A stretch of 64,000 nt of DNA from Bugula neritina (taxonomy: Eukaryota > Animalia > Bryozoa), in contig OZ037773.1 of the NCBI GenBank assembly GCA_964035545.1, positions 6,787,751 to 6,851,750 on the forward strand, read 5' to 3'. Both the position numbers and the translations under genes were made by a program. Below the pieces are notes generated by a model that was not told the DNA's origin, did no database searches, and saw only the letters and a list, made by a program, of their open reading frames with translations. Every line of letters begins with the position of its first letter. Position 1 is the first letter of the stretch. This document shows positions 36,760 through 60,838 of this stretch, in pieces.

Positions 36760-38459
36760 CCAAACTTTTGGAGTTATCTTCTCGAAGGCATTGTTTCTAT
36801 AATGGCGCATCTTTGAACTGAACATCTGAGAGTTTAGATATCAGTTCATGGATTTTATTAAATGCAGATCTATGTGTTCCAAACAAATTGTTTTACCTTG
36901 CCAAGTGGTATGGTCATGTATTCAACTTCCCATAAGACGTTACATTCTATAATGGCAATATTTACGTATGTATGGACTGTTATGATTTTACAGTTATGAC
37001 AGAAATACAGATTTGGTGCCACTGTTTCCCTTAATCATACCCTATGCGTTGAAAACTGTAAATGTATACGCGTTACTGAATAACTGTCCACATTCAAATA
37101 CATTAGTTTACAAGTTGCAAAATAATACATCAAAGTGTACAAAGTATATTCATTGGCTTTAGAATATATAAATTGCACTATTATGAATGCTAATAGTGCT
37201 GTGAAGCTATCTGAATTTGGCTATGCAAAAATAGCAATTGTAATAAATTATAGCCGCTGTCTGTACCTATATTTATGTAAGATGACTGCATTTATTGGTA
37301 CTTATATGTATTCTTTATTTATAGTTGGAAAGTGCGACAATTTTCACGTTTCAGGCCATTTATCCACCTACGAGTTTGCAGATGTTTGTCACAGCTTATC
37401 ACAATACTGTAATGTCAGAGACACATATCCTTATAGGTTGAGTCAGTTGTTAATTTAATATCTGTACCCACTTCAGTGACTTACTTCATTAAACCTAATC
37501 CAATAATCTACAGTACCTCTTTTGTAAAACCTAATCTATAAATCTACTGTTTCCTTCATAAACTATTAGTTTTGATTCACTTTGGCTGCAAAATCAGCTA
37601 TGCATTATGATGCCCACTTTGGTGCAACATTGCGTCTGCAAAATATTCAAATCAAGTTTTAGTCGCATGTTTAACTCCTGTATCTCATCATAGCCCTGTT
37701 TCCATGCTGGTAACATTATGTTCCAATTGTTATTTTTAAAAGTGAAATTTATCTGTTTCAAGATAAGGGCATATGCAATGGGCACAATCAACAAATAGTA
37801 ATGCTTTAATTTTTAGTTTTTTCAACAGTAGCATAGTGCGACAATTATAAAAATGCAAGTAACAATAATAACTACTAACTTGTTAATTTTGTTAACAAGG
37901 AATTTATGAGTTATGCTTGACAATAATAAAACAATGAAAAAGACATTGTGTAATGACTCTGTGTAGTTTGATTCGCTCTGCCTCAGAATACGGATGCTTT
38001 TATCTCTTATTCTGTAAACTATAGAATCGGTGTTCAAAGTAATTACTTATCTCAGTATCATACTTTGTGCTTTATTATATTTCTGTGACCTAACTATTGT
38101 AAAGCCAGTGTTCTGCTTTACATTGTACTCGAATTCTCTCGTCTTGCAACATACTTCTTCAAATCATCAGGTTAGTCTAATCGGTATTCAATCAATTATC
38201 TTGTTATTAGTTTGTGTTGCTTATGTACTATAATATATCTCTCTCAATTAACACTTCATATCAAATATGTTTCGAATATATGTTCCTCAACGTTTCACTG
38301 CCTTGTTTTACACATTTTACTTGGCTTGTAAAATTCAAAACTGCTACGTATATCTGATTTGTTTGTAATGTTTTTGCATATGACTTTATACTATAACTTT
38401 GTTTAAAAAAGAGTTTGCTTTCTATTTGTATTCATATATCAGTGTTTATTTTTTCAGCC

Positions 38460-41400
38460 ATGAGTTTCTTTAGAAGACTATTCTCTAGAAGAAGTTCTGA
38501 AGCTGCTCCTGGTGAAAGTGCCAGCGCAACTATTGAAAAGTTTGTTTTAATTTCATATTAAATAAAACTTTGTATTATTTTATATACAAAAATACTCATA
38601 TATCTTATAGTTAACTCTAGATTCTGTTGCACAGTAGTGCAGTTTGAATTGAATCCTAGCAATAATTCAAGCAATCTGTTTATTCAGAAGAATGCTTGAG
38701 AATTATTGGCAATAAAATTGTAATATATGGCGTAGTAGAAGTAAAATAAACAAACATTTCAGAAAGCACACATGCAGAATAATGAACTTTATTTAGGATC
38801 GGTACTTAACATCTTATCACGTAGAACTGTCTTGCAAAATGTGTAGTATTTGTGATTTACAATTACAGCTTTAAAAATAAAATAATAAAAAGCTAATAGC
38901 CCTCTACTTTAAAAGTTGTCTACTCTTAACTGAAGCCTATGTAAACCAAGGAATTTTCGCAACTACATGTCAATGATGATCGTTATGCTCAACATTTTTT
39001 CCTATAATTTGCTATTACTATGTATACTTATGATGCATGCTTATGATGTACACTCAATGTGTTTCAGACTGACGTTTGGAGTTCCAGTTAAACGAGCTTT
39101 TAGGAATAATGAGATTCCAGTAATGCTTCTGGTATGTTATCTGCTCCTGTAAATTGATAAATAACATGGGACATAATCTTAATCTGTAGTCCAATAGATA
39201 TACTTACTATAAAGTGACACACTTGTCTGTTTAGCTTCTTTAAGTTTACCATTTCAAATTATTTTGTAGAATATCTTTATGCACATCGCAGCAGTTGGTA
39301 TTTCCCAAACCGGGGTTTTCCGGCAACCAGGTAGTGCTGGGGAAGTACGCAAGATGTCAGAATTGTTGTCTACAGGAAAAGAAGTTGATCTCCACAGCGT
39401 GTCCATTCACGCATTATGTTCAGTTGTCAAGGTAACTGATTAATTCCAAATTTCTGATTTTATAACTTCTTATTTTACTTCAGATGGTTTGAAAAATGAG
39501 TACAAAAGTTACACCTTTAAATTTAATTATTTAAATTAAACGAAACTAATAATATTTTGGCACAAATTATAAACTTGAATAAATATGATTCATGCAATTT
39601 ATCAGCTTATGTATGGGCGCTTTCGGATTCCCTACGCGTAGGGAATCCGAAAGCGCCCATATATTAATTACCATCAAGTAATAAAAGCATCCATCTGCTA
39701 TATACAGTTACGTGTCATTGCAGAAATACTTAACATCTAACTACTTCTTTAAAATTTCTTCTCTATTTCTTGCTGTTGAGTATGTATTCTATACATTCCA
39801 GAAGTTTCTCCTTGCTATACCAAATGGCCTCCTCGGGAAACAAACAGAGAAAAAATTTCTAAAAGTGGTGAAAATTCAAGGAGTAGCTGAAAAGAAGAAA
39901 ATGATTACCAAGTGAGTAAATTATGGGTTATTGTAGCAAATCTGAGAGTTGGCTTTAGTGTTGAGTGAAAGTTTCATTCAGTTAGAAGCTTTTTTACATA
40001 AATTCGCATAATAAATAATTTGATATAATATCCTATTATGTTAGTATATTGTTTTAAACATATTGGTATTTACACGAGAATATTTTTTTCAAAAAATTAC
40101 TTTTAAATTATTAATCTTATGTTGTTGTTCTTTCCATTCTCACAGACTTCTCTCGTCTCTCTCCAAGCCGGTCAGACAACTCCTGACACTGATGGTCGGA
40201 CTCGCATATCTTGTATGTGAACGTCAAAACCTGCCATTTGAAAGTTTGGCCAAGTCTATTTCGGGCTCTATCTTTGTGTAAGTGGCTGTTTCTTTAATCT
40301 AATAGTCTTTAATTATTTGTAAGTTAGTTTTTACTTATTCCTACTTTAGGCAAAGTAATTAGTAATATATAAAAATTTGTTAATGCATTTGGCTGCAACA
40401 AATATTCAAAATTATAGCTTGTTGTACTTGTATAGTACTAATTCAAACTTACAGCTATCTGTTACACTAAATCTTATAGCATTTCTAGAATAGAGTTAGC
40501 ATAATGCCAAGTTGTTTTATGTATATATATTTTGGATTTATATGGATTTAATGCATTCTTCAACAGAAACAGCAACAATGACCCCCATAAGATAAAGAAA
40601 GCTGTTGAAGTAATGGAGATTCTAATCTCCTTCTTTCCACTGTCCTCGGTGTTTGGGCTAAGTCACCATAACCAGTTTGCTGAGATAACAAAGACAGGAT
40701 CTGTGAAAGATAACGTCTATCAGATTAGTGCCTCGCGTAAGTAGAATTTAAAGTGTCTTCCAACATATTTAGCACTTGTATGATTATATTTGTATGCCAA
40801 GTTAAATTCTGCAGTCACTTTGAACATATGTAACAAGTGTATGGTTATATTTCCATGACAATTTACATTTTGAATTTTGCACAACCTTTTTGGGGTGTAT
40901 TGCTTGAAACTCAAATACTTTTTGCATAACTCATGTAATAATCAACATTTTGTTGAATCATATGAGTTGATGCTGACTTTGATATTTCTCCTAGTCTTTG
41001 GTCCCATAACCCAGATTCACATCTCATATGGTATATCTTCTTCTACAAGTACCAGTTACTCTGAATTACTTAAAACTGTTTTATAGAAAGAATTAAAATA
41101 GTATCTGTATTTTGGACATTGTTTATTACAGCTTGTGGTGATGGAATTGAGAAGCCCACTAAGGTAAGAAAATATTGTATTCGAAGTTTCTTTTGTGATC
41201 ATAATTTTCCACATATAGTTTGTTTATAATATAATCCAAATTTAATTTTGTCTGTAAAAAGATGAACTGCTTTTTGGCTTTCAATGGTACATTCTGTTTT
41301 AGTACTAGTTTGCTAATTTCAATCAGCCAGAACGGCTATTAAGTTATTTTGATGGAAATTATTTAGCCTCCTATTTCTTTGTGTGTTACAGTGTTTTGAT

Positions 41401-42260
41401 TTACTAAATATTTGTTATATTAAAATAATACTTATATTGGCTGCAGCATTTGCAAAGGCTTGAATACTATTCTATTTTGCTATATTCTAATGCATTTCAT
41501 TAACAATACTTTGTCTTTTTAATGTTTAAATTTTCACTTTATTTGAGAATCAAAATTTAAGTGCATGAAATTGAAGTTAAATAATCCCAAATGCATTTTT
41601 TACACAGCCTACACTACCATTTCCTGAGTTTATAAAGTTGTACAATGAGGAGGCGGAGAAATTAATGATGCGAAGTTTAGAGCGACTGAGAAAAGTATGT
41701 TATGTGTCTATGAATGAGTCTCTGTTCAGCTTTCTGGTGTCATAACTATTGTATATGTCTTGTTTTTTATATTTCTTTCTTTTTTTTAAAGTTTATGTTT
41801 AAATATAGCTTTTAGCTTTACTTATATAACAGAATTATATTTTAGTTCTGCCTTTTTCTATCTTTCTTCATTATTATGTCAGCTGTAACCTTATCTTCTT
41901 GCATAACTCTAGACTCCAACTTCTGCTTACTTTTCCACTCTATTCTATGTTCTACTCTGTTTCTTCATGTTATTCTAGAGATCCGAATGGTTCCTCGATC
42001 CCACTGATAAATTTTCTTTGCTATATCAGCAAATAGTAATAAAAGTAACCACCAGCTCTGATATTCTACCATGCGATCCTCCTAAACCAACCACCATCTC
42101 TGCCTCATCTTTTCTCTTAGAGAAATATCCACCACCTCCGTATCCATTTGCTCTTACCACAACCAACTCTGAACCTGTACTTCCTTCCTATTTACAATTC
42201 ACATTTCCTGCTGATTTCCATGGTCCAACTAGAACTACTTCTGCACCAAGCTGCTTCTGA
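38460..42260 (+). CDS. Small Rho GTPase-activating protein (~372 aa, ARHGAP20/TAGAP-like GAP domain). Exons: 38460-38539, 39068-39131, 39270-39431, 39802-39911, 40146-40277, 40567-40736, 41132-41163, 41608-41694, 41979-42260
   Basis: LTFGVPV...IPVMLL, GVFRQPG (arginine finger), SIHALCSVVKKFLLAIPNGLL, LLSSLSKPVRQLL, LAKSISGSIF. The frame continues via a GTAAGT donor at 40737 into three more in-phase exons ending in ORF 42018-42260. Confidence 0.85.
39612..39661. repeat. Perfect 50-bp GC-rich palindrome in RhoGAP intron 3
   Basis: TATGGGCGCTTTCGGATTCCCTACG|CGTAGGGAATCCGAAAGCGCCCATA; the arms are exact reverse complements with no spacer. Confidence 0.95.
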
Positions 42261-44552
42261 CATTCTCTCTCTCATTATTGTGCTCTGTGCATTCTGTTTA
42301 ATAAGGCATCAAAACGTATAATTACCTTAAATTTCTTTCTGATATTTAAGTTATAGTTTAGCTAAAGCAACACCAATTGACATTCTTTAGTTATAATGAT
42401 TGTCATGTTCTCTAAACATAATCTTTTTGTCCTGTCACTTTATAACCTCAGTTCTTATTCCTTAATTGTTTAGAAACTTAATTTCTTTTTAGACTAGAAT
42501 ATTTTATGACTTTGTTCTATCACAAAGTTGGTATATAATTATAATCTTCTTAATTTTTAGCGTCATACTATTATAGCTAAAGCTGATAAATTTATTTATT
42601 ACTTATTAAATTTTATTTGTGTATGTTATATTTCATCACACAAAAGTTATATCACTACTTCAATAAATATTTTGTTCGTTAAAATACACTTTACATGGCT
42701 ATTTTTAACTTGCTATTCACAACATTAAAAATGTGATCATTTTATTGCAGATTGATTTAATTTATTCTAGGCTTTATATATCAATAATCCACAATTTAAA
42801 CAGCAACTCAATGTCCATGCAACCTTTACTACATTTCTCTGTTTTACATGAACATTTGGGGAACCTTTGATAATTCAAATAGTGTCAGAAAGCAACTAAA
42901 CTTTCATTGGTTTTTAAGTTGTGTTTCCTTTAAATTCAGTTTCAAATAGTCGCAGCTCTCTTCATTGTGGCCCAGCTTCTTGTGTTATAATTGCAGAGGC
43001 GTTGCTTCATCTTGATTACATTTGCACGCCTTAAATATAAATATTAATGGTACTCTAACATATAAGTGAAATACAATAATGAAACTTGATCAGTTTTGGA
43101 GTTGTGTTGCCTTCCTAAAGCTAATGATCAACAGTTATTTATTTAATTCTACCATGAGTTATTGTTCTAAAATCTAAAATGCCACTTTATTTTCAATTAT
43201 ATACAAGATATTTTTGTAATGATAGAGGGGTAAACTGCAATGCAAAACTCCACTTCCCTGTGTATAATTCTTCAATTTAAATAAAAGACTATCTAAATAC
43301 CTCTGTATACTGGCTTATAAAGGTAACATCGTAGCTAACATTTTTATATGAATGAAACGCTCAATAGCACATATAGAAGCAAATGCGTCAGGGTAGCCAA
43401 ATTGATTCATGGGCACTCATGGAAAGGGCATGTCACTACGGTTTTTAAAAGCCATCAAAAGTTTATCACGATCACAGTTGGAAAGCAATTAATATTCTTT
43501 TTCACAGTTGCAAACACCAGAAAAGGAAATTCTATCGATATTTACTTCAATTGATTTTTCAAAGTCATCTTGGCTTTAAAAAAGTCTTTTTAATTCTATA
43601 TAATGTATTATTTTAAGTTTCATAGGTACACATTTACATAGTGTAAATAAATTTCAAATACTTTGTTTACCATGATCATATTTCTTTTAATCTGAAACAT
43701 TCATCGATAAAGATTTGTAGTTGATTGTCTTTACATCAAATAGAACTGCTTGGAAATTGTGGCAAAATATCTGGTAGCCAAATCTATTACATGCAAATTT
43801 TGCATCATTTGTGATAAACTCTACTTTGCAGTTGCATGTGCAGTTGCCACCCCTCTTTGAACACGGCTGTATAAGAGACAACAATTCCAGAAGGGCTGCT
43901 GCAAAATAATGAAGGCTGTGTCATTGTCTTTTGATGGAGGAAACTGTTTGAATAGTTGCTATTAATTTTTGTGAAAAGCACTAGATGGAAAGGGCTTTTT
44001 ATAGCAGGCTAACAGTTTATTCTAATGTGGCACAGAAGCAATTATAACTGGATGCTCTTCCGGGCATCACCAATGGTGTTTGGGCTTAAACTACTGACCT
44101 TGTGTTTACTAGGTCAGCTTTCTATAACTACTACACCATGACTGCTCACCAGCTCTTTACAAGAATCATAATATTGCAATACTGTTTAAGATCAGGCCAA
44201 TCCAGATTGAAAAGCTTTCATTCTAGTTTTCTTTATAATATAATTACACCTCCTCACTTAGCTTTAAGTAATGTAATATATTTCTGTTTGCAGCAGCTGC
44301 CACAGAAAATTTGTATTGTCAAACTATTTCACTGGAAGGGAGAAAAAAAAATCTAGCAAGTTTTAGCATAATTAATATAGCATTAATTTTGTGCAATGTT
44401 AATCAACAAAGCTTCACACGTTCCTTGTCACTTTTGAGTTTAGGAAGTAAACAGCTATTCATCATTTTCCCACTAGGAAAAACTGAACCGGAACTTCAAG
44501 AAAAAACTCCACCTATAAAATTTACATACATAACATTAGCTAGATAGAGCAG

Positions 44553-44559
44553 TATATAA
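44553..44559 (+). promoter_or_regulatory. TATA box of copy A1
   Basis: TATATAA 80 nt upstream of the ATG, conserved in A2. Confidence 0.55.
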
Positions 44560-44632
44560 TTCAGAGTACGCAGGTCTTGCAAGTGAGACTGATAGGTGAA
44601 GGAGAAAAAGAGGGTGATCACCATACACCACC

Positions 44633-45905
44633 ATGCGTCAGCTAGTTGTATTTTCCATACTAGTCTTACTCACTATTTTCTTTAGTGAGAGTAAATCTTC
44701 TAGCGCCAACTTGAACCTGCAGGTAAGTTTTTTAGATTGATTGTATGTTTTAAAAATTAGCTTCATTTTCACACGGATAAATTCACCAAATAAGTAAAAT
44801 ATAGCTATTAAAATTGTGTCAATCTTTAGTAATTAATACAGGCTTGAATAAAATATAAGCATTTGCCTACTACAACCTTTGAAACCTTCTTGATTGCATT
44901 TTTTACTGATTGAGTTGTGACTACAGATTAAAGTAAGTGGTCATAGCAATCGGTATCTTTAGAATCGACAAACTTTGAGGTCTGCGAGATCTTGGAGGAG
45001 ACCTACCAGATGTAGATACACCAGGTATGGACCAAGCAGCTGTAGGCCAGCACAACCTTGGGGACCAAGGCCACACCAGCCAGCACCAACTATGGGCCCT
45101 GTTGTTGGCCCACCTTTAGAACCAGCTCCAGGTCCAGATCCAACGGCAGCTCCTGGCTTAGAAAATGGGATCATTAGAGAGGTATCTTATCCTTTTATAT
45201 TTTGAATAAGATTAATAAAAAGGTGATCAAAACTGATTTAGGTTCATAGAGGTGTAGCTCCAACAGACATGTTGTTGGTAAGTTTCTATCTTCTTGAAAA
45301 GTTTTATTTAATGTCATTTAACTTTCATAGCTTAAATCTATTTTCAGGTTTCCACAGTGCAATGCGTTGATACAACTCCTCAAGGTCCTACTGCTGGCGC
45401 ACCTGGAGGAAGTTCGTGCAGATACGTCTTTCGAGTAGTCTGCAGCGGAAGGAGGAAAAAAAGATCTGCAGTACACCACCGCAGTTCTCATAATAGTTAC
45501 AGGGGAGTAACTGGTCCAGATGGGCTATCTTTTAGCCCAGGAGCACCAAGGCATCCAGGTACTCCGCTAGCACCAGGAGCACCAAGACATCCAGGTACTC
45601 CGCTAGCACCAGGAACACCAAGACCACCGGGCACTCCGATAGCACCAGGAACACCAAGACCACCGGGCACCACGATAGCACCAGGAACACCAAGACCACC
45701 AGGAACACCAAAACCTCCACCTGGATCTTCTGGTAACAGATTTCCAAGTTTACCAGATAACTTTGTGTGTGATACAGCTGGTCTACCTTTGCCTGATCAA
45801 ACAGAGCCTCCTGCTCCATCCCCACCTCCTACTCAACCACCTGGAGGTGGAGAGCCTGGAGTACCTGGGGGTAGATGTCCAGTTGTACCAGATGTAATTT
45901 GTTGA
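44633..45905 (+). CDS. Secreted Pro/Gly-rich, Cys-framed protein, family copy A1 (~288 aa). Exons 44633-44722, 44963-45181, 45348-45905
   Basis: Kozak-like CACCATG; signal-peptide-like [22 protein letters not shown]; furin site RRKKR; 36-nt (PGTPRxPGTPLA-type) repeats; C-terminus CPVVPDVIC*; TATA upstream and AATAAA at ~46019. Exon-2 start is ambiguous (see findings). Confidence 0.85.
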
Positions 45906-47416
45906 GACTTATTCTCCATATCGCTTGTTTCACAAGACTGAAGTGATCATTGTAAAAGTATGTTTTTAAATCAAATATTATTACAATCTTTCTACTAATC
46001 AAGACTGCAACATACAAGAATAAAATTACCAAAATTTTAATTATTTTCGTGTACTTTTAAAACATTGTATTGAGAGACAAGCAAATAATGTATAAAAAAT
46101 TCAATTTGGTGAATGCATATATAAATATAAAAATTGAATAAATAAATCCCATAAAAATTGGACAGTTTTAACATTATTTAAATCTTCTTATTTGGACAGA
46201 TAGATAAATTATAATTATATAGTAATAATTTTTTGGATATTTAAAAAATACAAGCGCAGGTTTTTCTACTATTTAACTACATAACAAATCCATTGTTTCT
46301 TGCAATGCAAATCTCTTGCTTTTAGTTTCAGCTTAATTTGTACCAACTCACTTGCAACTTGAAACCGTGAATAAAGGAAGGCGTGCAGCTGTGAACTATA
46401 GTTCACAATCTAGTCACTCTAGTCAATAACAAAAAGCTTTGGTAAAAACAGCCATTGCTTTGTACATATAAGTAAAGCACATTAATCATATTATAAAGTC
46501 TATTTCTAGCTGACACTATTTAAATTTTGTGGCTTCGCATTTAGCAACACCCACATTTAATTTTACATCAAACATGACTCACTTCCACAAGTATGGTAAG
46601 TTTTCGCTTTAAAGACAAAAATATAGCATAGAAGATATTATTTCAAGCTGTAGGTATATTTCTTTATAAATCTCTTTATATTCATCTAAATTAATTAGGC
46701 AAAGCCGTGCAATATGCATCCAAAGACATACTACAGTTTATATCATATTTCAGTGTAAAAAATATGCCTGCTTTCTTTCTTTGTGGCTAGGACTTTTGAA
46801 TGTCTTTGAGTAGTTCTATACAGAGCAAATAAAATAGCGCAGTGAATCAGAATTTTGTTTTAAAGTGTTTGACTGTAGCATATTATAATTTAGTTGCTGA
46901 GAATTACAATCTAGCATATTTGATGACCGACTTGGCATTATTTACATTTTTAATTTTGCATAACCTTTTTGGAGTGTATTGCTTGAAACTCAAATACTTT
47001 TTGCATAACTCATGTAATAATTAAGATTTTGTTGAATCATATGAGTTGATGCTGACTCTAATATTTCTCATAATCTTTGGCCCCATAACCTAGCTTCACA
47101 TCTCATACAGTATAAGTTTAGAAGAAATGAAAATAATATCTGGAATTTGAACATTTTTATTACAGCTTGTGGTGATGAAATTGATAAACCCACTAAGGTA
47201 AGGAAATATTGTATTCAAAGTTTTTCTTGTTTGTAATTATAAATGTCAACATATAGTATGTTCACAATATAATCCAAATTTAACTTTTACTTTAAAAAAA
47301 GAAATTATTTTAGTCTTTCAACAGTGCAATTCATTTTCTAGAGTGATAAAAAATTGTGCATTGCACTCAGCTGAAATTGTGTTATTGAGATAATTATGAT
47401 GATGTAAATTATGTGT

Positions 47417-47663
47417 GGGTCATTCAGCTACCTTATGGTTGTGGACCGTTACGGTTTTTTCATGACGGTCCGCACTCCTAATAAGCTAAATAAATAAAAA
47501 AACATGGGAAATCAAGCAAAATTAAAAAGAACCTTAATTATTTCGTGTATTTATTGGTGTTTTACTAGCTTTGGGCAAAAAGCCATGTTCATTACCATTT
47601 AAATTGTGAAAAATAGCTAAAAACTGGAGATTTCAGTGTGTACTAAATTAAGTAAAATGACCC
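47417..47663. mobile_element. MITE-like non-autonomous element
   Basis: Termini GGGTCATT...AATGACCC flanked by GTGT direct repeats; subterminal hairpin GTGGACCGT..ACGGTCCGC; related copy at ~30535-30772. Confidence 0.7.
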
Positions 47664-48390
47664 GTGTGCTTTTTAATTGATTGGCTTTTGTGCTCTTTTA
47701 GCTTATCAATTATGTTTTATATGGAATTATCACTTCATGGTTTACAAACTTACGAATTGGTTGCCGTTGGTAAAAACCTAGACATTATCTTATTTGTGGA
47801 TTTACTGTCTAGCATACAATAGATATGACAATAAAACACAGTACTTGGAGCAGTTGATATGATCATGCGTACTTCATTAAAAGAAGGTGTATCTTTATTA
47901 ATGTTTAACTTTTCACATTATTTGAACATCAAACTCTGTTTAATACATGCAATTTTGTTGTTTAATAATCTGAAGGCATTCTTTACACAGCCTACACTAC
48001 CATTTCCTGAGTTTATAAAGCTGTACAATAAGGCTAGGCGGAGAAATTGATGATGCGAAGTTTAGATCGACTGAGAAAAGTATGTTATGTGTCTATGAAT
48101 GAGTCTCTATTCAGCTTTCTAGTGTCATAACTATTGTATATGTCTTGTTTTTGTTTTGTTATATTATCTTTGTTCTTTTCTTTTAAAACTAACTTTTAAA
48201 CTTGTTTAAAATTTATGTTTTTATGTAGCTTTTAGCTTCGTTTATCTAACAGAATTTTATTTAATAATAGATTTTACTGCTGCCTTTTTCTATATTTATT
48301 ATATGTAACCTTGTCTTCTCGTGTAACTCTATAGTTTTACTTCTGTTTACTCTTCTAGTCTGTTCTATGTTGTACTCTGTTTCTTCATAT

Positions 48391-48844
48391 TGTTGTAGTT
48401 TTGTGGACTACTACCAGTGCGGTTTATTGTGTGCTGAACTACTGAATCATAACCTAATTACGAGGTTAGCGAAGAGAATAGTTGCGTCATAATAGTAACT
48501 ATATTTCGAATCTAATTATACAAGGAAAAATACAAACAGTAGTAAAAGAGTGCACACATAGAGAATCAGTTATACAAGCGACTAGTTTATCATATACATG
48601 TAGCTATCATGAGACTGAGGCTGGGCGCCGGCAGGCGCTACTTATAAATGGAGGGTTTAATCTGATTGGCCGGTGGGGTTCCGGCGGTGGTGACCGTAAT
48701 GAGTAGTGCGGTACCGCATATCCATGCCGCAGAAGTGCGGAATTTTAGAATGTTAGACTGAGCATAGCATGTAGAGTTATCGTACCTTAAAAATATAACA
48801 TAATACAACGGTCGGGGGAAATAATACTTCTCACAGTCATTACA
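48391..48844 (-). mobile_element. Solo LTR (454 bp), Gypsy-like by its 4-bp TSD
   Basis: TGT...ACA termini with ATAT target-site duplication (48387-48390 / 48845-48848). Absent at the paralogous site ~41967-41970. Minus strand shows CCAAT, then TTATAA, then AATAAA ~30 nt from the end. Confidence 0.85.
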
Positions 48845-51603
48845 ATATTCTTCTAGAGATCCGAATGGTTCCTTGATCCGACTGATAAATTTTCATCAAT
48901 TTATCAGCAAATAGTAGTAAAAGTGACCACCAGTTTTGATATTTTACCATAAAATCCTCCTAAACCAGCCACCATCTCTGCCTCATTTCCTCTCTTAAAG
49001 AAATATTTACCTTCTCCGTATCCATTTGCTCTTACCACAACCAACTCTGAACCTGTACTTCCTTTGTATCTACAATTTACATTTCCTGCTGATTTCCATG
49101 ATCTAACCAGAGCTACTTTTGCACCAAGCTGCTTCTAACATTCTCTCTCATTTCTGTGCTCTGTGCATACTATTTAGTGTTCATATTATAACATCTAATT
49201 GACTTAATTATTTTCCGATTTTCAAGTTATAGTTGAGCCAAAATAGTGCCAATGGACATTCTTTAGTTATAATGATCACCATATTCTACAAAGACGGCTA
49301 TTTTGTTGTGTCATTTTATAACCTCAGTTCTTATTACATAGTTGCTTTGAAACTTAATTTCTTTTTAGACTAAAATATTTCATGTTTCTGTGTATCACAA
49401 AGTTAGTCTGAATTATTAGCGTCATGCTAGTATAGCTAAAGATGATTTATTTATTTACTATATATTTTACTTTATGTATGTGATGATAGTTCATCCCATA
49501 CAACTTATATCCCTATCTCAATAAACTTATTTATTCATTATAATACATAATAGATGGTTATTTGAACTTTATTCACTAAATTACTAATATGATCATCTCA
49601 ATGCAGATTGATTTGATCTAGTTCAAATGCCATATAGCAACAATCGGCAATTTAATATCTCCGTCAATATAGCTTTTACTGTGTGTTTATGCTTTAAGTG
49701 AAAACTTGGGAATTTTTGATAATTCAATTAAAGTTATATAAAGCAACTAAATTGTTTTTGTTTTGAAAGTTGTGTCCACTTTGATATCCAGCCTCCAACA
49801 ACCGCAGCTCTCTCTATTGTGGTCCAGTTTCTGGTGTTGTTATAACTGCAGGGGCGTTGCTTTATCTTGATTACATTTGCATGTCTTAAATATAAATATT
49901 AATGATGCTCTAACATATGAGTGAAATAAAATAATGAACCTTGACCAGTTTTGGAGTTGTATTGTCTTCCTAAAGCTAATGATTAACAGCTATTTATTCA
50001 ATTTCACCATGAGTTATTGTTCTAAAATCTAAATTTACTAAAATGTTGTTGTAACTGCAGCGGCTTAGCTTGTTTTGAATTTGATTACTAGGATAAAATT
50101 AACATGAGGATGAAATACAATGGAAAACTTGATCGATTTTGGAGTTGTGTTTACTTGCAAAAGCTAATGATTATACACAGTTATTTAATTTTACCATGCT
50201 GCATTGTTAGAAATGTGCTAAAATGCTTTTTTATTTTTTATCATATGCAAAATAATGACAAAATTAAAAAAATTCTTTAGCTCCACTTCTCTGTGTATAT
50301 ATAGGCTTCAATGCTTCAATTTAGATAAAAGACTACCTAAGTCCTAAAGGCTTGTATAAACTGTCATACGGCACATCATAGCCAACATTTTCATATCAAC
50401 AAAATACCGAATAGCACACCTAGAAAACATATGTGACAGCAGTAGCCTTATTGGGTTGTTGCAGGTCATGAAAAATTCATGCTTTTACTCTTCGTAAAAG
50501 CTATCAAAAGTTGGTCATCGAAGTGGAAAAGCAATTAGTTTCCTTATTCCCAGATGCAAACAGTAGAAAGAAAACCCTATAAAAATGTATGTTTATTAAT
50601 TTTTAAAAGTCATCTCTACTTATCAAAACTCCTTTAATTCTATATAATGTGTTATCTTCAGTGTCATTAGTATACTTTTACAACACTTTGTTTGTCATGA
50701 TCATAATATTTCTTTTAATCTGAAATATTCATCAATAGTGATTTGTAGTTGATTGTCTTTACATCATATAGAACTGCTTGGATGCAGCAAAATATTTAGT
50801 AGCAAAATTTGCAGCCCTATGTGAAGTTGTCATCCCTCTTGGAATACAGCTCTAAGGGACAAAATTTTAAAAACGCTGCTCCAACATACTGAGAGCTCTA
50901 TTGGTTTTTCTTAGTTGGCATTCACAAGCCAAACATTGCAATTACCATTATCTTTTGAGACACGAGAATGTTCAAATACTTGAGTTTTTACCAGCGCTAT
51001 ACTGGTGATTTTGTAGTTGCTATTCCTGTGAGAAACCCTGGAGAGAAGATTTTTTTTCTAGCAGGTTAAGTATTTTTTAAATCGGGCTAAGGATTTATTT
51101 AGATGTGGCGTAGGAGAAATTATGACTGGGTGCTCTTGCTAACATCACCGCCGATGTTTGGATTTGTGTTTACTAAAACACTTCACCACGGCTACTCACC
51201 AGTTTCTTGCAATAATTATAATATTGGAATAGCTGTTTGAGTTTATGTCAATCCAAGTTGAGGAGCATTCAATTTTATTTTTTTTGTATAATTACACTTC
51301 CTCACTTTGCTATAATTATTGCAATATATTTTTGATTAAAGCAGCTACTACAGAAAATTGATATTGTCAAACTATTTCACTAGAAGGGAGAATAAAAAAG
51401 TTGATATGTTTTAGCATAATTAATATAGCATTAATATTGTGCAATATCAATCAGCAAAACTTCACACGTTCCTTGTCACTTTTGAGTTTAGGAAGTAAAC
51501 AGCTATTCATCATTTTCCTACTAGAAAAAACTACTGAATCGGAACTTCAAGAAAAAAATTCCCTCATAAAATTTACATACATAACATTAGATAGATAGAG
51601 CAG

Positions 51604-51610
51604 TATATAA
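51604..51610 (+). promoter_or_regulatory. TATA box of copy A2
   Basis: TATATAA 80 nt upstream of the ATG. Confidence 0.55.
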
Positions 51611-51683
51611 TTCAGAGTAAGCAGGTCTTGTAAGTGAGACTGATAGGTGAAGGAGAGAAAGAAGGTGATCATCATACACCACC

Positions 51684-53021
51684 ATGCGTCAGCTAGTTGT
51701 ATTTTCGATACTAGTTTTACTCACTATTTTCATCCGTGAGAGTAAATCTTCTAGCGCCAACTTGAACCTGCAGGTAAGTTTTTTAGATTGATTGTATGTT
51801 TTAAAAATTAGCTTCATTTCACACGGATAAATTCACTAAATTAGTACAATCTAGCCATTAAAATTGTGTAAATCTTTAGTATTTAATACAGACTTGAATA
51901 AAATATAAGCATTTGCCTACTACAACCTTTGAAACCTTCTTGATTGCATTTTTTACTGATTGAGTTGTGACTACAGATTAAAGTAAGTGGTCATAGCAAT
52001 TGGTATCTTTAGAATCGACAACCTTTGAGGTCTGCAAGATCTTGGAGGAGACCTACCAGATGTAGATACACCAGGTATGGACCAAGCAGCTGTAGACCAG
52101 CACAACCTTGGGGACCAAGGCCACACCAGCCAGCACCAACTACTGGCCCTGTTGTTGGACCACCTTTAGGACCAGGTTCAAGTCCGACAGCAGCTCCTGC
52201 TTTGGAAAATGGGATCATTAGAGAGGTACCCTATTTCTTTCCATGTTAAAGGAGGCTATCAAAATTGATTTATTGAACTAAATCAAAGTTGATATCTATA
52301 AAAGCTATAATAATGGTATTGTTGGCAAGTTTTCATCTTTTGAATAGTTTTATTTATTGTCATTTAACTTTTATGGCTTTTCTATTTTCAGGTTTCCACA
52401 GTGCAATGCCGTGATACAACTCCAAGGGGTCCAACTGAGGGCAGACCTGGAGGGTTTTCGTGCAGATATGTCTTTCGAGTAGACTGCAGCGGCAGGAGGA
52501 AAAAAAGATCTGCAGTACACCACCGCAGTTCTCATAATACTTACAGGGGAGTAACTGGTCCAGGTGGGCTATCTTTTAGTCCAGGAGCACCAAGGCATCC
52601 AGGTACTCCGCTAGCACCAGGAACACCAAGACAGCCTGGTACTCCACTAGCACCAGGAACACCAAGACAACCTGGTACTCCACTAACACCAGGAACACCA
52701 AGACAGCCAGGTTCTCCGCTAGCACCAGGAACACCAAGACAGCCAGGTTCTCCGCTAGCACCAGGAACACCAAGACAGCCAGGTTCTCTGATAGCGCCAG
52801 GAACCCCAAGACCACCAACAGCACCAAGATCTCCACCTGGATCTCCTGGTAACAGATTTCCAAGTTTGCCAGATAACTTTGCGTGTGATACAGCTGGTCT
52901 ACCTTTGCCTGATCAAACAGAGATTCCTGCTCCACCTCCACCTCCGGTTCAAACACCTGGAGGTGGACAACCTGGAATACCAGGGGGTGGTTGTCCAGTT
53001 GTACCAGATATAATCTGTTAA
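51684..53021 (+). CDS. Secreted Pro/Gly-rich protein, copy A2 (~310 aa). Exons 51684-51773, 52013-52225, 52392-53021
   Basis: Close paralog of A1 with the same exon structure, intact frame and more repeat units; ends CPVVPDIIC*. Confidence 0.85.
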
Positions 53022-54837
53022 GATGTTTTCTCTATTGTTTTTCTCACAGGACTGAAATTATTACTGTAAAGGTATATTATTGAATCAAATACTATTACAC
53101 TGTTTCTACTAGTCAAGACTATAACATACAAGGATAAAACCACCAAAATTTGAATTAGTTTTGTGTATTTTTAAAACATTTTATTGAAACACAATCAATT
53201 ATAATGTACAAAAAATTCAATATGGCACATGTATATATAACTATCTAATAAACCAACCTCATAAAAATTGGACAGTGGTAAAACATGTTATTTGGACAGA
53301 TAATAGATAAACTATAGTTATATAGTAATAATTTCTATACAGCCAGATATAATGCTTTGTGACTGTTTATTTAAATAATTAAAAAGAATACAAGCCTACA
53401 TGTGTCTACTATTGAATAATTTAACTATAATATAACTTAAATTCATTGTTTCTTGCAATGCAAATCTCTTGCTTTTAGTTTCAGCTTAATTTTTACCAAC
53501 TCACTTGCAACCTAAAACAGTAAATAAAGGAAGGCGAGTAGCTGTGAGTCATCCTGCTCAATAACAGAAAGCTTTGGTGGAAACAGCCATTGGTTTGGTA
53601 TAAATAGCCATTGGTTTGTACATCTAAGTAAAGCACATTAATCATAATATTAGCAAGTCTATTTCCAGTTGACACCATTTACATTTTGTGGTTTCTCGTA
53701 TAGTAACACCCACATTTATTTTTACATCAAACATGACTCACTTCCACAAGTATGGTAAGGTTTTGCTTTAAAAATGAAAATATACCATAGTAAATATTAT
53801 TTCAAGCAGTGTGTATATTTTTTTATAAATCTTTTTATATACATCTAAATTGATTAGACAAAGCTGTGCAATATGTATCCAAAAACATGTGTCGTTTATA
53901 TCATATTTCAATGTAAAAAAATATGTCTGCTTTCATTCTTTGTGGCTGTCTTTTGAAGTAGTTCTACACAGCAAATAGAGTAGCCCAGTAAACCAGAATT
54001 TTGTTTAAAAAAGTTTGACTGTAGCATATCATAATTTAGTTGCTGAGAATTATAATTTAGCATATTTGATGGCTCACTTGGCATTATACTTGACAGCTAC
54101 AAGCAAAATGTGGTCAAGAGTTCACATCTGGAGAGAAAATTTCTCAGAATTTATTGTTGTTTATGCAGCTATTTTAGCTTCCATGTTTTAAAACAATTCA
54201 GGAGAATTTGATAAAATCTCTAATAACTGACTAAGCAAGACAATTGGCAACAAGCCAAACATTGCCTACCAGATCTATAATAGATGCTGTAAATAATTAA
54301 CTTCTCTATCTTAATCCTTTCAAACATTAAAACATACTGACCCAATCACAGTGCCTGAGCATAATCCGTGGCCATAAGCCACCAGTCAAAAGTTCAAATA
54401 TTTAATCTCTTAATATAAGAGCTTTAGAAATAAATACAATATTTTCACATGGCTCAAGTTTTAAATGCAAATATTTGTCACTAAAAATTAGAATATTCTC
54501 AGCTAATAGAAAAAAATTTAAAGTATTTTATAATGTAATAGCTCTATATTGATTCTGAATCATTTTATTGCACCTACGCAAATATAACATTCACTAGTCC
54601 AAAGCTATTAAACGAATCATGCATTACATACCAGTTTTACGACACACCATGGGCAAAACAAATTAAATTAGGATGAAATAAACTTGATGTAACTTAAAGA
54701 AGCGTTACGAACTAGTCATTAGGTCACCGTAGCTCAATACTAAAACACGTCTGCTAGTGCCAGTGGCACTAAAGAATAGACGACACAGCTAGAACACCTG
54801 TATCATTACTCAGAAAGAAGAGCATCATCTAAAGGAA

Positions 54838-56469
54838 ATGAGAGCTAGCCTTGTTTTTCTCACATCTGTACTTTTATCCACCTTTCTAAGTGAAGTCACC
54901 TCAAGTGATAATGACCAGGTAAGCTATAAAATCATATGTAGGTGCAAAGACCTGTAATTTGTTTTATGTCTTTTTCATGGTCAACATAGTTGACTACTTT
55001 TGCTAACATTATTTATAATTCATTTGTCTGTAATTCTTAACATCTCTATAATTTGAATAATTTTAAATACTACAGATTTTAGACTTCAACTCAGTGAAAA
55101 CATTCCATCATCCTAAAGGACCTCCGAGAGCTAGGAGAAAAAGATCTGCCTCAGTGCAGTCCTGCTCAACTTTGCCCAACAGCGCTCCTGGGTGTAGATA
55201 CAACGTAAGAGTAAACATTGAAGAGGTAAATATTGTATTTCCGAGCATAAACATTTGCTGTGTTAGGAGCAGCTGTGGTTTGGGGTTAAATCCTGGCTTA
55301 GTAAGCCTAAAGTCAGGGTTCTATACCTAGTAAAGCTTATAGGTGCATGATGTTAGGGAGGGCGTTCAGTCATATATTAAATGTAATGTTACTAGCCCAT
55401 TTAAAAAATCTGTTTTATCAAGGGTTCTCACAGGGATAGCGACTATAAACCCACATCATTGTTATAGCTTAAAATTGCTGAGTTAGACAAATTTACAAAT
55501 ATCGCAATATTGGAAAAATTCTCTCCAAGCTAATTGCGGCAGTTTCACAAGTTTCTTGAAGACATGTTTGTAACAAAAGTGTGACTTAGGCTATTATATA
55601 CATTAAACAAAATTTGTTTTAATATAATTGTAATAAAACTTGTTCCAATCATAAAAGGTCCTTTTTTGACATCCTTTACAACTTTAATTCATCAGTCTAT
55701 CACATTTGTAATGTACACACCAAAAATAGTTTTTCAGTTATATTGGATAAAATTCGTTAATCATTAATGCACATATTGTGTTTTTAATTTACGAATAAGA
55801 ATGTAAAATATATTGGTTATAGTTAATAGAATTTCTATTGCCTAGTATTAATTATTTTAGAATGGATCGCTAACCTGTGAAGACACAAGGTCATCAACTA
55901 GAGGGTCTCATACCACTGGGCAAAACCAACATAACCCTTCTTCACCTCTTAATCAACCAGGTAGAGTACCAGGCAGGCGGGCTAAAAGGACATTGCGCAA
56001 TGTTCCAGAAAGTTTTATTCAAAAAGAACGAAGCGTCTCAACACCATTAAAGAGAGTCAGCAAATCACTGCGTTCCGTACATTGCAGAAAAGTGACATAT
56101 GTAGTCTGTCTGGAGGGAAGGCCACCATCTTCTAGAGCAAAACGCAGTGAATCAAGACCAAGCTCATCAACAGGTGTGCCTTGTCAGGCAGGTGTGCCCG
56201 GTCAGGCAGGTGTACCTGGTCAAGCAGGTGTACCTGGTCAGGTAGGTGTACCTGGTCAAGCAGGTGTACCTGGTCAGGTAGGTGTACCTGGTCAAGCAGG
56301 TGTACCTTGTCAAGCAGGTCAGCAAACAGGATCACAGTCAATTATAGCAGTTCCAGCAAGTCCGTTTTCTAGCATACCTGATGGTGTAAATTGTGAGACG
56401 CCCCCAGTTAGTGCTCCAGGTCCTGGCGGTGTGGATAATTGTAAAAGAGTGCCGGATATTATTTGCTGA
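54838..56469 (+). CDS. Secreted Cys-framed protein with short Gly-X-Y tract, copy B1 (~279 aa). Exons 54838-54918, 55076-55225, 55861-56469
   Basis: Signal-peptide-like MRASLVFLTSVLLSTFLSEVTS; furin sites RRKR, RRAKR, RAKR; (GVPGQA/V)n; ends CKRVPDIIC*; phase-0 introns as in A1/A2. Confidence 0.85.
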
Positions 56470-59305
56470 GGGCTTCTATTGATATAATAAAACATAGCTG
56501 TGATCACTGCTTACAATATCAGGACTTGGGAATAAGCTTTTTCTATTATCATTAGTTTTAAGGCTTAGAAAATAACTGCTATTTGATTGAGTGAAATCTT
56601 AAAGTTGATTATATAACCATTATTATACTTTTTTATAAAATAATGATGTGTATTATTCTATATTAGCATAACAATTTTTATTTACATTAAAAATGATTTG
56701 CAACTTTGATATTTGCTTCTTAGTTAGTAAACGTTTATTAAATTAAATTATACATAAGAATGATGACTTGTTAGCTATATTTTATGGCTATTGTTATGTA
56801 AGATCACTAACTGGTTACATAATCATATAAAAAACATAACATTACAAATATAAACTTTCCATTGTTATTCAAATAAATCTCTGATAAAATAATAAAACAT
56901 TTAACATCAGTATAGTTGATACAATAGTGAATGCAATCATATTTTCTATAATGTTCTATAATGTCACCGGTCAGTTAAAAATAGTTTTACATTTCCATAC
57001 AGAGAGTACTATTCTATATTGAAGCAATAGCAAGATTTCAAATAATTATTTAGATTGATTACTGCTTACTTAATGATGGCAGGTAACACAGAAATGTAAT
57101 TACTAAAAAATTAAAAATAATGTTTCAAGTTTTGATAAATTTTTAACAGATGAATTTGACTGGCTAGTTAATGGCATATAAACAGTGTGACAACATGCAG
57201 CTGTGTACAGGTTTTGGTAATAAAAATAGAATCATAAATTATAATAAATGTTGTTCACTTGTAGAAAAACAGGATATAAACTAAAATAAAATCTTGGGGT
57301 TCTAAAATCTAGTAATAGCGGTAATGAGAAAAAATTTAGTAAACAAAGGTAAAAAAAGGAAAAATGCAAACATACTAGCTTACGCAAGACGTAGACTAAA
57401 ATGTAAAAGCTTTAAAATAAATAAATTAGTAATATTATAAGATATCATATAAAAAATAATATGAATGAAACCTTTCACTATTCTTTGCATATTATATGGT
57501 TACACACCATGCATGTAGGAAGTTTATACATATATAAGAAGATAAGTTCAATACAAACATTATATGTATTATAAGATTATGAATGTAGTACAAATATTTA
57601 GACATTTCATATTTTTTCATATTGTAAATTATCAAAAGCAGATTTTTGCTTCTAAAACTATAACAAGTTCCCATACAAGGATGTTCACATAAATATTGGG
57701 TTCTTATAAATACCCCCTCACCCAACGTTGATCTAATCAGTGCACCAGAACTATTATGAGGCTGCATGTTCCAGTTTATAGCTGTTACTAAAATTATCTC
57801 AAGTAATTACATCTTACAAGATTAGTTTTATAGGCGTAACTTATTTTTGTTGTTTAAAATCTAGCAGAAACTGGTTATGCATGAAAAAATAACAGAATAA
57901 TGATTAATTCAATTTGGTCAAGATAATATAGAGTCAGGTTGAGTCAGTTACTATAGTACGGGAATTCTAAGGCTTTATTGAAGAAAATTCTTATCCCATA
58001 TGGGTATGCATGGATAAAATATTTTTATAATAATATGTGCAATTACCCTAAGAACATTTTCGGTTAACAGCAAGCTTTAAAATTGATACTAATTACATAG
58101 ACCACTGATAATTTATATTTACATTTTACAGGAATGACTGAAATTGGGCGAAACTTGCAGATCTAAACTAATTTAGTTAACTTGAAACTTGAAATTCTCA
58201 AAAAAATTTCCTGATAGACTTTTAAACCAAAAGGGAGTGAGTAGTTGAACTGTCACTTATCCAGTCACCTGTCACCAGCTCAGATGGGGGAGGGGGGGGG
58301 AATTTGTCTTTGCTGTTGATTAATTTAATTCTAAATCAACAAATCACAGTGAGTGATGGGTGATTTATACCCAGTCATATGTCCACCCAATTTATTAGTA
58401 GAAAGGTCTACTGTTTTGCGTTAGAAACCAGGAAATTGAGTAATTCAATTAACTATTATTGTTGGCAGACATTTTAGTTGAGCCAGTGGCATTTGTGTGC
58501 ATATATCAAAACCTATAGATGTATGGGTACATATATAAATTGGTCAAGAGTTTGCATCTATAATAGAAAAAATTTCTCAGAATTTCATTGTTGTTTATGC
58601 AGAACTTTATTTTATTTTCCATGTTTTAAAAAATATTCAGGAGAACTTCATAAAATCTCAAATAATTTGCTAAGCAAGACATTTAGATGCTGTAAATATT
58701 TACCTGTTCTGCTTTAATCCTTTCAAACATTAAAACATACTAACCTAATCACAGCTGCAAATATTCCAATACCAGAAAACGGTTGGTGAGCATAATCCGT
58801 GGTTATCAGCCATCAGTCAAAAGTTGAAATATTTAGCCTTCCAATAACTGTGATTTGGATATAAATATAATATTTTTACATGGCTCAACTTTTATGCAAT
58901 CCTTTTTATTTACTAAAAATTAAAATAATAAATTTCTAGCTAATAGATAAAAATTTAAAATATTTTATAATGCAATAGCTCTTAGCCTTGGATCATTCTA
59001 TTGCGCCTACACAAATATAAGATTAGCCAGTCCAAGGCTATAAAACAAATCATGCATTACATACCACTCTTACGACACACTCCGCAAAACAAATTGAATT
59101 AGGATGAAATAAATTTGATGATAAATTATACATGTATGTGTTTAAAGGAGAAACTTTTTTAAGTGAAGAGTTACAGACTAGAGTCAATAGGTTGCCGTAG
59201 CTCAATACTAAAACTTGTCTGCTAGTACCAGTGGCACTAAAGAATAGACGACACAGCTAGAACACCTGTATCATTGCCCAGAAAGAAGAACATCATCTGA
59301 AGGAA

Positions 59306-60838
59306 ATGAGAGCTAGCCTTGCTTTTCTCACATCTGTACTTTTATCCACCTTTCTAAGTGAAGTCACCTCAAGTGGTAATGACCAGGTAAGCTATAAAAT
59401 CATATGTAGATGCAAAGACCTGAATCTGTTTTATGTCTTTTTCATGGTCAACATAGTTGACTATTTTTGCTAACATTATTTATTAATTTGTCTCTAACCC
59501 TTAATATCTTTATAGTTTTCAATATTGCACTACAGATTTTAGACTTCAACTCCATGAAGACATTCCATCATCCTAAAGAACCTCCAAGAGGTAGAAGGAA
59601 GAGATCTGTGTCATTGCCCTCTTTTGCCCGTGTGCCTGACAGTGTTCTTCGGTGAAGATACAACCGAGTAGTAACAATTGAAGAGGTAGATGTCATATTA
59701 TATACAAACATAAAATTTTTTCATGTAAGACATGCAGCCGATTTTAGGATTAAATTGCTGGCTTAGTAAACATGCTGTCAGTGGGCAATACTTAGTAAAG
59801 GTAGTTTTAGGAAGAGTATTTAGTCATAATTGCTTCTGTGCCACAATACAAATCAAGTCATTAGCTCAATTGAAAATCCGTACATAGGTTCTCACAGGGA
59901 TGGTAACTATATAAACTCATGTCACTGTTAGGTACAGCCTAAAATTGCTGAGTTAAGGTAAATTTACAAAATATCTAAATATTGAAAAATTTCTTTACAA
60001 GTGATTTGTGGCAGCTTCAAAAATTTCCGTAAGATACACTTGTAGTAACACAAGTCCAACACCAGCGTGACCTATGTACATTAATCAAAATTGTTTTTTA
60101 ATATACTAACTATAAGGAAGTTTGTTAGAATTAAAGTAGGCCCTTTCTGACACTCATTGTAACTTCAACTCACCAGCCTACCAAATTTGTGATTTGCGAA
60201 TCAAGAATAATTCTTTCAACTAAAACAAATAAAATTGGTTTATAATTGTGCATAGCCTACTATATTTATAAACAGAAAGGAATGTAAAAGAAGTAGCCTA
60301 TATTTATAGCCAATATTGCAGCATTTCTAGTTTTTATTTTTATTTTTTACTTTAGTATGGATCTGTAACCTGTGAAGACACAAGGTCATCAACTAGAGGG
60401 TCCAATGCTGCTGGGCAAAACCAACATAACCCTTCTTCACCTTTTACTCAACCGGGGAGAGCACCAGGCAGACGGGCTAAAAGAACATTGCGCAATGTTG
60501 CAGAAAGTTTTATTCAAAAAGAACGAAGCATCTCAACATCTTTAAGGAGGGCCAGGAAATCACTGCGTTCTATAACATGCAGAGAAGTAGCTTATTTAGT
60601 CTGTATTAGGCTAATATTTTCCAGAACAAGATCACGACAACCAACAGGTATGCCTCATCAGGCAGGTGTGCCTACCAGCTCACAGTCAATTATAGCAGTT
60701 CCAGATAGTCCTTATTCTAGCATACCAGATGGCGTGAACTGTGAAAAGCATGCAGGGAGAAGATCAGGTCCTCATGAGAGTAGACCAGTCCCTGGTGGTT
60801 TGAATAATTGTCATAGCGTGCCGGATATTATTTGTTGA
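59306..60838 (+). pseudogene. Copy B2, with an in-frame TGA at 59653-59655 (probable pseudogene/null allele; recoding not excluded). Exons 59306-59386, 59536-59685, 60356-60838
   Basis: Collinear with B1 (exons 1 and 2 same length). TGA replaces B1 TGT(Cys). Splice sites and exon-3 frame intact to CHSVPDIIC*. Confidence 0.7.

Follow-up and report, generated by a model that had tools for sequence, protein, structure and literature searches.

Cnidarian minicollagens are small secreted proteins with a pro-region, taxon-restricted and encoded by multi-gene families, in which a collagen run of ~12-16 triplets lies between cysteine (Cys) terminal domains able to form inter-molecular disulfides. Nematode cuticle collagens, of ~300 residues and encoded by tandem families, have Cys clusters beside the Gly-X-Y region and a furin-type R-x-x-R site that is required for maturation. 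The crustacean penaeidins, arasin and hyastatin are cationic secreted precursors from fast-evolving multi-gene families that join a Pro-rich stretch to a disulfide-stabilised domain, and in the insulin superfamily a loop is cut between Cys segments to leave disulfide-joined chains. Described in these terms, all of them bear a likeness (in the case of insulin, one of mechanism only) to a family of genes clustered at positions 44633 to 60838 of a 64,000-nucleotide stretch of bryozoan DNA, which we call the window (G000:C9:6787751-6851750 of a host assembly of 216 Mb). Bugula is a major fouling organism and, to our knowledge, the cuticle, adhesive and surface-defence molecules of bryozoans are almost uncharacterised.

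In contrast to the C-x3-C series of minicollagens, the family here is made of 3-Cys modules with C-x7-C spacing, has Gly-X-Y triplets in a single gene (B1), carries a convertase site within the Cys frame and belongs to another phylum; the minicollagen pattern C-x3-C-x3-C-x3-C-x3-C-C does not occur in the Cys spacing of the family, and no sequence similarity to minicollagens was found by Pfam and database searches. Compared with nematode cuticle collagens, there is one run of 13 triplets in B1, a non-collagen rod in the A-type proteins and a set of rodless compact paralogs, and Col_cuticle_N had no match in a Pfam scan of all exons at E<=1. Unlike penaeidins, arasin and hyastatin, the Pro-rich tract here lies within the Cys frame and not at the N-terminus, Arg density is lower, Cys spacing is unrelated and no homology was detected. 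As opposed to insulin, a single site stands beside the insert with no connecting peptide to be excised, and both Cys pattern and size are unrelated.

With confidence falling somewhat short of even, we propose to place three genes of the cluster, A1, A2 and B1, as derived members in a bugulid-restricted family of pre-pro-proteins that would be associated with the extracellular matrix. What is new here, as read from the genome, is a duplicated 3-Cys module, a mini gene (M) that carries it singly, and compact paralogs (D1, E1) in which both copies lie side by side.

Results

The cluster bounds are exactly the A1 start codon (44633) and the B2 stop codon (60838), in AT-rich DNA (31-40% GC) with spliceosomal introns. 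A1, A2, B1 and B2 have three exons each, all in phase 0 and separated by GT-AG introns throughout; an earlier note on this DNA had placed four such genes here, with exon 1 ending in Q and exon 2 in E, and we see both endings, exon 1 being a hydrophobic leader. The features, in window positions, are as follows.

44633..44722, + strand: A1 exon 1, start codon and hydrophobic leader, ending ...NLQ, phase 0
44963..45181, + strand: A1 exon 2, basic stretch with R-S-A-R, C1-x9-C2, Pro-rich tract, ending ...IRE
45348..45905, + strand: A1 exon 3, module 1 (C3, C4-x7-C5), convertase site, repeat, module 2 (C6, C7-x7-C8), stop
45453..45464, + strand: A1 R-K-K-R convertase-type site, immediately past C5, invariant in 5 A-type sequences
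45533..45719, + strand: A1 repeat, 36 nt x 4.8, 12-residue P-G-T-P-x-x units, Gly every sixth residue
51684..51773, + strand: A2 exon 1 (leader)
52013..52225, + strand: A2 exon 2
52392..53021, + strand: A2 exon 3
52497..52508, + strand: A2 R-K-K-R site
52581..52812, + strand: A2 repeat, 36 nt x 6.4
54838..54918, + strand: B1 exon 1, leader, ending ...NDQ
55076..55225, + strand: B1 exon 2, pro-region, R-R-K-R (55133-55144), C1-x9-C2, ending ...IEE
55861..56469, + strand: B1 exon 3, C3, ~68-residue basic insert, C4-x7-C5, collagen tract, module 2, stop
55978-55989, + strand: B1 R-A-K-R within the basic insert
56134-56145, + strand: B1 R-A-K-R after C4-x7-C5
56167..56319, + strand: B1 collagen tract, 18 nt x 8.6, 13 Gly-X-Y triplets, Cys at the flanking Gly positions (PF01391)
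59306..59386, + strand: B2 exon 1 (leader)
59536..59685, + strand: B2 exon 2, broken
59653..59655, + strand: B2 in-frame TGA, in the place of the Cys codon C2 of B1
60356..60838, + strand: B2 exon 3, six Cys retained, collagen repeat collapsed, third RxKR gone

Exon 3 contains two copies of a module comprising C-x-[DE]-[TS], a Pro/Gly stretch ending in P-G-G, one to three further residues and C-x2-V-x4-C. The genome has at least four members beyond A1, A2, B1 and B2, namely M and, recovered by a profile of this module together with follow-up searches of the host genome, D1, D2 and E1. All eight fit the family definition, a leader-bearing precursor with the module once or twice at its C-terminus (with Ile for Val in E1). 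Within A or within B the two modules resemble each other weakly (z=2.7-3.3). The mini gene M (G000:C9:6856446-6857023, minus strand), positioned in inverted orientation 4.7 kb past the window and 9.4 kb after B2, has two phase-0 exons encoding a leader, a pro-region ending in K-R and a 38-residue peptide with a charge of +6.5; the Cys layout of this peptide is C-x7-C, 19 residues and C-x7-C-stop, that is, one module plus one extra Cys. M resembled A module 1 (z=9.6, end-to-end), A module 2 (z=7.9) and B module 2 (z=10.4), with 0/5000 shuffles in each comparison. We thus read the Cys frame of the family as two copies of a single 3-Cys module, bridged by M. Across the 216 Mb, C-x2-V-P-x-[IV]-[IV]-C-stop is found five times as a terminal motif, each time inside this 23-kb cluster, vs. 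two genome-wide occurrences of the reversed pattern, taken as the control, and the stricter V-P-D form is confined genome-wide to A1, A2, B1 and B2.

The compact paralogs D1 and E1 share with A and B the layout of three phase-0 exons and an exon 3 that begins five residues ahead of C3. In them, all six Cys-bearing segments follow one another within 75-84 residues, no repeat intervening, and they match both halves of A and B with z=4.4-11.1. D1 lies on chromosome 4 (exon 3 at G000:C4:22508428-22508655, minus strand, 75 residues); its exon 2, ending ...IVEE, encodes a pro-region that has an R-Y-R-R site and lacks Cys, and in its exon 3 the two modules are 14 residues apart, with neither RxKR nor repeat. 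E1 (G000:C9:7652098-7653062, minus strand, exon 3 at 7652098-7652352) is 0.8 Mb from the cluster; exon 2 harbors R-S-K-R and one Cys, and exon 3 comprises both modules, with 32 residues from C5 to C6 and the ending I-P-D-I-I-C-stop. The putative exon 1 of E1 resembles a signal anchor, which suggests a membrane-tethered precursor that would be shed by cleavage. In A and B, the convertase site and repeat cassette sit precisely between C5 and the F-P-S-L motif. The proposal in the earlier note that a small fold is split by an inserted loop is supported because the Cys segments of D1 and E1 are contiguous, with these two genes being natural unsplit versions. D2, 3.9 kb from the intact D1, has a 1-nt deletion leading to a frameshift. 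D1 and D2 form a 3.9-kb tandem duplication (G000:C4:22508428-22512521, minus strand), each unit of which also has a separate Cys-rich open reading frame (ORF) of >220 residues. Two weak genome matches (C2:26519277 and C1:29837741) were rejected on inspection by eye.

At the DNA level, A1 and A2 are 83.5% identical and B1 and B2 75-80%, while blastn (word 7, E<=1e-3) was empty between A and B, in agreement with the dissimilarity reported at the outset. As proteins, A and B resemble each other beyond chance: shuffle tests gave z=6.1 for the leader and z=5.9 for the C-terminal segment (0/2000 shuffles in both), with a weaker z=2.2 for the segment of C-x7-C and RxKR. The Cys spacing across the family frame is C-x9-C; C-x17/68-C-x7-C; C-x15/35-C-x7-C. 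From the Cys skeleton first put forward, C-x-D-T, C-R-x-V-x4-C, R-x-K-R, [FY]-x-S-[LI]-P-D-x3-C-[DE] and the terminal C-x2-V-P-D-[IV]-I-C were recovered; C-R-Y, however, is C-T-Y in both B. neritina copies and falls away as a conserved motif, and the P-D of [FY]-x-S-[LI]-P-D is variable (P-N and S-N in relatives). The exon-2 Cys residues equated there between A and B are probably not the homologous ones, the equivalence having probably been shifted, because C-x9-C is present in both A and B. Sites of the RxKR type comprise R-K-K-R in A1 and A2, and R-R-K-R plus two R-A-K-R in B1, in keeping with the furin consensus.

B2 departs from this plan. In exon 2, an in-frame TGA (59653-59655) replaces C2 and the first Cys (C1) is changed to Phe, leaving B2 without both exon-2 cysteines; the repeat has collapsed and the third RxKR is missing. 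The TGA did not vary in read-based contigs of the only public run. Given the in-frame TGA, the C1 to Phe change and the loss of both the repeat and the third RxKR, B2 is probably a pseudogene, i.e. a decayed copy. The picture of a four-gene family with B2 as a regular member has to be revised accordingly, with B2 broken and at least four more members elsewhere in the genome. The read-based contigs of the public DNA run contain some heterozygous sites and, over window 59276-59426 (B2 exon 1 and intron 1), a second haplotype-like contig with seven differing positions and one inserted T.

The tandem arrays behind the Pro/Gly repeats of the earlier note are real, with Tandem Repeats Finder calling them in A1, A2 and B1 at the unit lengths and copy numbers listed above, but the elastomeric reading is not borne out: the B1 tract is Gly-X-Y collagen, and the A repeat has Gly at every sixth residue. 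In B1, (Gly-X-Y)13 is uninterrupted, with Pro at Y in alternate triplets and Cys in the place of Gly at both ends, and PF01391 matched exon 3 at residues 105-154 (31 bits vs. a cut-off of 27.2); in Pfam, PF01391 had no match on A1, A2 or B2. The A repeat, with ~4 to 8 units varying between copies, has frequent Thr-Pro and X-Pro-Gly motifs and, with Gly at every sixth residue, is neither collagen nor elastin-like. Such Thr-Pro and X-Pro-Gly content suits an extended polyproline-II spacer, possibly hydroxylated and O-glycosylated.

Matches of tblastn on the antisense strand had prompted the idea that the G-V-P-G-Q-A repeat of B1 is an inverted A repeat. This was rejected, since 15% of random synonymous recodings do as well as the observed match of 21/36; the match therefore follows from the complementarity of Gly and Pro codons, to which, rather than to inversion, the antisense readings of the A and B1 repeats are also due (p about 0.15). 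On the minus strand of window 52547-52816, the antisense of the A repeat is an open Gly-X-Y frame, and at 56167-56319 the antisense of the B1 repeat reads P-G-T-P with stops. Elsewhere in the host genome, G000:C4:17048000-17078700 contains giant uninterrupted collagen-type frames of 3466 and 2994 codons with G-A-P-G-Q-A-like triplets; these match B1 in the repeat alone, and such a length in a single exon is unusual for an animal.

Conservation was assessed in A1, A2, two genes of B. neritina and a contig from a JGI metagenome (L047/P0001), which together are five A-type sequences of at least two bugulid sources. Across the five, no change was seen in any Cys, in the R-[KR]-K-[KR]-R|S site or in long stretches free of Cys. 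Purifying selection, for which the earlier note had asked, was examined in these A-type genes: pairwise dN/dS was 0.27-0.55 at dS 0.1-0.25 (Fisher p 1e-4 to 0.05), with no region strongly distinct, and the A-type coding sequence is under moderate purifying selection. Between B1 and B2, dN/dS was 0.51 overall and 1.2 in the repeat segment, as expected if B2 is decaying.

One of the B. neritina genes is annotated as EB796_015614 (P0002). It has the same exons as A1 and, read in the correct frame, 87% protein identity to it (245/281 residues); raw matches to A1 exon 3 were 63% for P0002 and 71% for P0001. A 1-nt deletion in its repeat (L041 10712-11283; …CAGCCGGTACT… vs. …CAGCCAGGTACT…) has misframed ~45 residues of the model, and may be either an assembly error or a real frameshift. 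L041, the deposited B. neritina contig (VXIV02002355.1, GCA_010799875.2), is colinear with window 34888-47135 at 85-88% DNA identity, and has INTS7 upstream followed by two A-type genes, in the same place as in the window. Non-coding divergence between the window and the deposited B. neritina assembly is ~13%, from which we take the host to be a bugulid near to, yet probably distinct from, the sequenced B. neritina; neutral DNA divergence among A-type copies is 13-25%. Copy number differs between the two bugulids, with the flanks pointing to three or more A copies in the deposited B. neritina. No B-type orthologue was found; the B. neritina contig stops 4.5 kb beyond the fetched locus.

The gene models have further ordinary features. 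A1 and A2 share a TATATAA box at -80 and a ACCACCATG start context, B1 and B2 have AATAAA 17 nt past the stop, and the exon-2 acceptor of A1 is the one used in the B. neritina annotation (P0002). An alternative exon-2 entrance can be seen at 44921-44965, 51971-52012 and L041 10281-10324, with an upstream AG, ATTAAA, GTAAGT and an in-frame TAG; the GTAAGT reads GTAGGT in both B. neritina copies, so this perfect donor is not conserved, and the B. neritina annotation takes the downstream acceptor instead of the alternative entrance.

Database searches with A1, A2 and B1, run exon by exon, pointed to an unrecognised family, as had been claimed. Pfam had no match on the Cys segments, with the scan of all exons at E<=1 returning PF01391 on B1 alone; PDB sequence and profile searches gave repeat matches or none, and ESM Atlas gave no usable match. 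A word-based search of 5.8 billion clusters led from A to P0001 and P0002 only and from B to collagen-repeat matches only, and a profile of the A and B C-terminal module, applied with no word filter to 1.84 billion representatives, again returned P0001 and P0002 only, with no characterised family among the results. Neither the C-module alignment nor D1 exon 3 recovered a relative when scanned against metagenomes, although records near this genome may be left out there. No description of the family was found in the literature, and both public relatives are unnamed ("hypothetical protein EB796_015614" [Bugula neritina] for P0002, a JGI metagenome ORF for P0001). Within the protein libraries searched by the C-module profile, this is apparently an orphan family restricted to bugulids.

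Discussion

We surmise that the C-terminal six-Cys domain of ~75 residues, comprising two tandem 3-Cys modules, would be the mature part of these proteins. In the compact forms (D1, E1) the modules stand back to back, and the mini form (M) has a single module and an additional Cys. Along the branches leading to A and B, the inter-module loop appears to have been enlarged by a cassette consisting of a convertase site just past C5 and a fast-evolving extended rod, likely a polyproline-II or mucin-like 12-residue Pro/Gly/Thr repeat in A and the Cys-capped (Gly-X-Y)13 in B1, with the C-x9-C pair in exon 2 as a presumed gain of A and B. Following removal of the leader, a furin-type enzyme is predicted to cut after R-x-K-R, which would leave 5 Cys on the N-chain and 3 on the C-chain; such odd counts, if all Cys are oxidised, imply at least one inter-chain or inter-molecular disulfide. 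The rod would then become a long tail or spacer on the C-chain.

As for the disulfides, C1 and C2 are present together in A and B and lost together in B2, and are therefore probably paired with each other, and the module that stands alone in M has exactly one extra Cys, as if each module had one bond within itself and one to the outside. That the two C-x7-C units keep the same x7 spacing in every member would also agree with a ladder of two antiparallel strands, but the topology that we draw from these patterns is a guess, and secretion and convertase cleavage are predicted at the level of motifs. Taken together, the rods with their Cys caps and the odd numbers of Cys favor an extracellular, cross-linkable and matrix-associated molecule, possibly of the cuticle, a surface coat or an adhesive, with the Cys domain serving as a cross-linking or binding head. 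Its plan would resemble that of minicollagens or cuticle collagens, with no homology to either.

Several points weigh against this proposal: 1) the only public sequencing run carrying the locus is of DNA; 2) the gene models of M, D1, D2 and E1 were derived from sequence alone; 3) convertase cleavage is predicted from motifs; 4) the matrix role is weak, with neither an enrichment in Tyr/DOPA nor a domain known from matrix proteins, such as a chitin-binding one; 5) dN/dS of 0.3-0.5 represents moderate constraint only; 6) AlphaFold2 had a mean pLDDT of 46 for P0002 as a single sequence, where the leader helix alone was confident, and of 41.5 for A1 exon 3 with a 6-row alignment, so the check on disulfide pairing suggested in the earlier note yielded no confident fold; 7) a basic site before the C-terminal Cys domain, found in every member, is equally the design of a secreted bioactive peptide; and 8) mature M, a 38-residue product with a charge of +6.5, is peptide-like, and M and the compact paralogs would pass for pro-peptide precursors as readily as for matrix proteins. 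The weak strands that AlphaFold2 placed on both C-x7-C segments (pLDDT <=~50) are counted as no evidence, and the models were left out of fold searches because low-confidence models yield meaningless matches. A trimer prediction with three copies of the B1 C-chain returned no answer (score 0.00), which counts neither for nor against trimers, and the MAFFT alignments to P0002, in which exon pieces fell in the wrong places, were set aside.

The last two of these points lead to the best surviving alternative, a possible but rather unlikely one, namely that the genes encode precursors of soluble bioactive products, such as host-defence or antimicrobial peptides, toxins or hormones, from which a convertase would free cationic Cys-stabilised peptides, with the Pro/Gly tract being a pro-region or a Pro-rich effector part and no structural rod. 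The layout of leader, pro-region, basic site and C-terminal Cys domain common to all members agrees well with this idea, as do the three RxKR sites of B1 and the strong positive charge of the presumed products, which is +10 to +13 in the N-chains of A, +9.5 in the middle piece of B1 and +6.5 in mature M; in addition, tandem birth-and-death with pseudogenes (B2, D2) and moderate constraint is seen in many immune-effector clusters. On the other hand, a real, Cys-capped collagen tract of 13 triplets, as in B1, is unusual for peptide effectors, and the A repeat, with one Arg per 12 residues that is often followed by Pro, looks like neither a multi-copy precursor nor a typical Pro/Arg antimicrobial peptide. 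Furthermore, the single site beside the insert means that nothing is excised, and the Pfam, PDB and ESM Atlas searches gave no similarity to a known peptide family.

A second alternative is that the genes have diverged from a known structural family of the collagen type, be it the minicollagens of cnidarians or the cuticle collagens of nematodes. B1 does exceed the Pfam threshold for the collagen repeat, and small proteins with a furin-type site and Cys on either side of the tract, encoded by a tandem gene family, are reminiscent of both groups. Nevertheless, Gly-X-Y is found in B1 alone, with Gly at every sixth residue in A1 and A2; no Col_cuticle_N or other domain emerged from the Pfam scan; the C-x7-C modules are unlike the C-x3-C series of minicollagens; database collagen matches are confined to the repeat; and the compact paralogs are devoid of any repeat. 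We regard this alternative as largely refuted and, at this stage, very improbable. That the models are not functional genes at all, but chance ORFs or a decaying lineage-specific duplication, seems equally remote, for although the only public run is DNA, B2 and D2 are broken, the family is an orphan and structure predictions are of low confidence, dN/dS is significantly <1 in most comparisons, the eight Cys, RxKR and long non-Cys stretches are invariant in A-type sequences despite 13-25% neutral divergence, splice sites are canonical, TATA, Kozak and poly(A) signals are present, one copy was independently annotated in B. neritina and intron phases are kept across four subfamilies.

Returning to the matrix-associated pre-pro-protein family, we can also entertain a bolder version of it, which we consider improbable though worth stating: that the pair of 3-Cys modules makes up a new disulfide-rich fold, able to accommodate >100 inserted residues in the loop between the modules, and that in one bryozoan lineage this loop became a convertase site with a polyproline or collagen rod, giving rise to a two-chain, rod-bearing building block of cuticle or adhesive or to a tethered defence molecule. 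If this were true, the cluster would represent a traceable and recent invention of a lineage-specific matrix component from a peptide-like ancestor.

Comprising eight or more loci, of which six look intact, the family constitutes a small and defined set of candidates. It also provides a built-in evolutionary series, from one module through two compact modules to two modules bearing a rod, that bears on how taxon-restricted secreted proteins originate and diversify and on how a domain may be split into disulfide-linked chains by way of an inserted convertase site.

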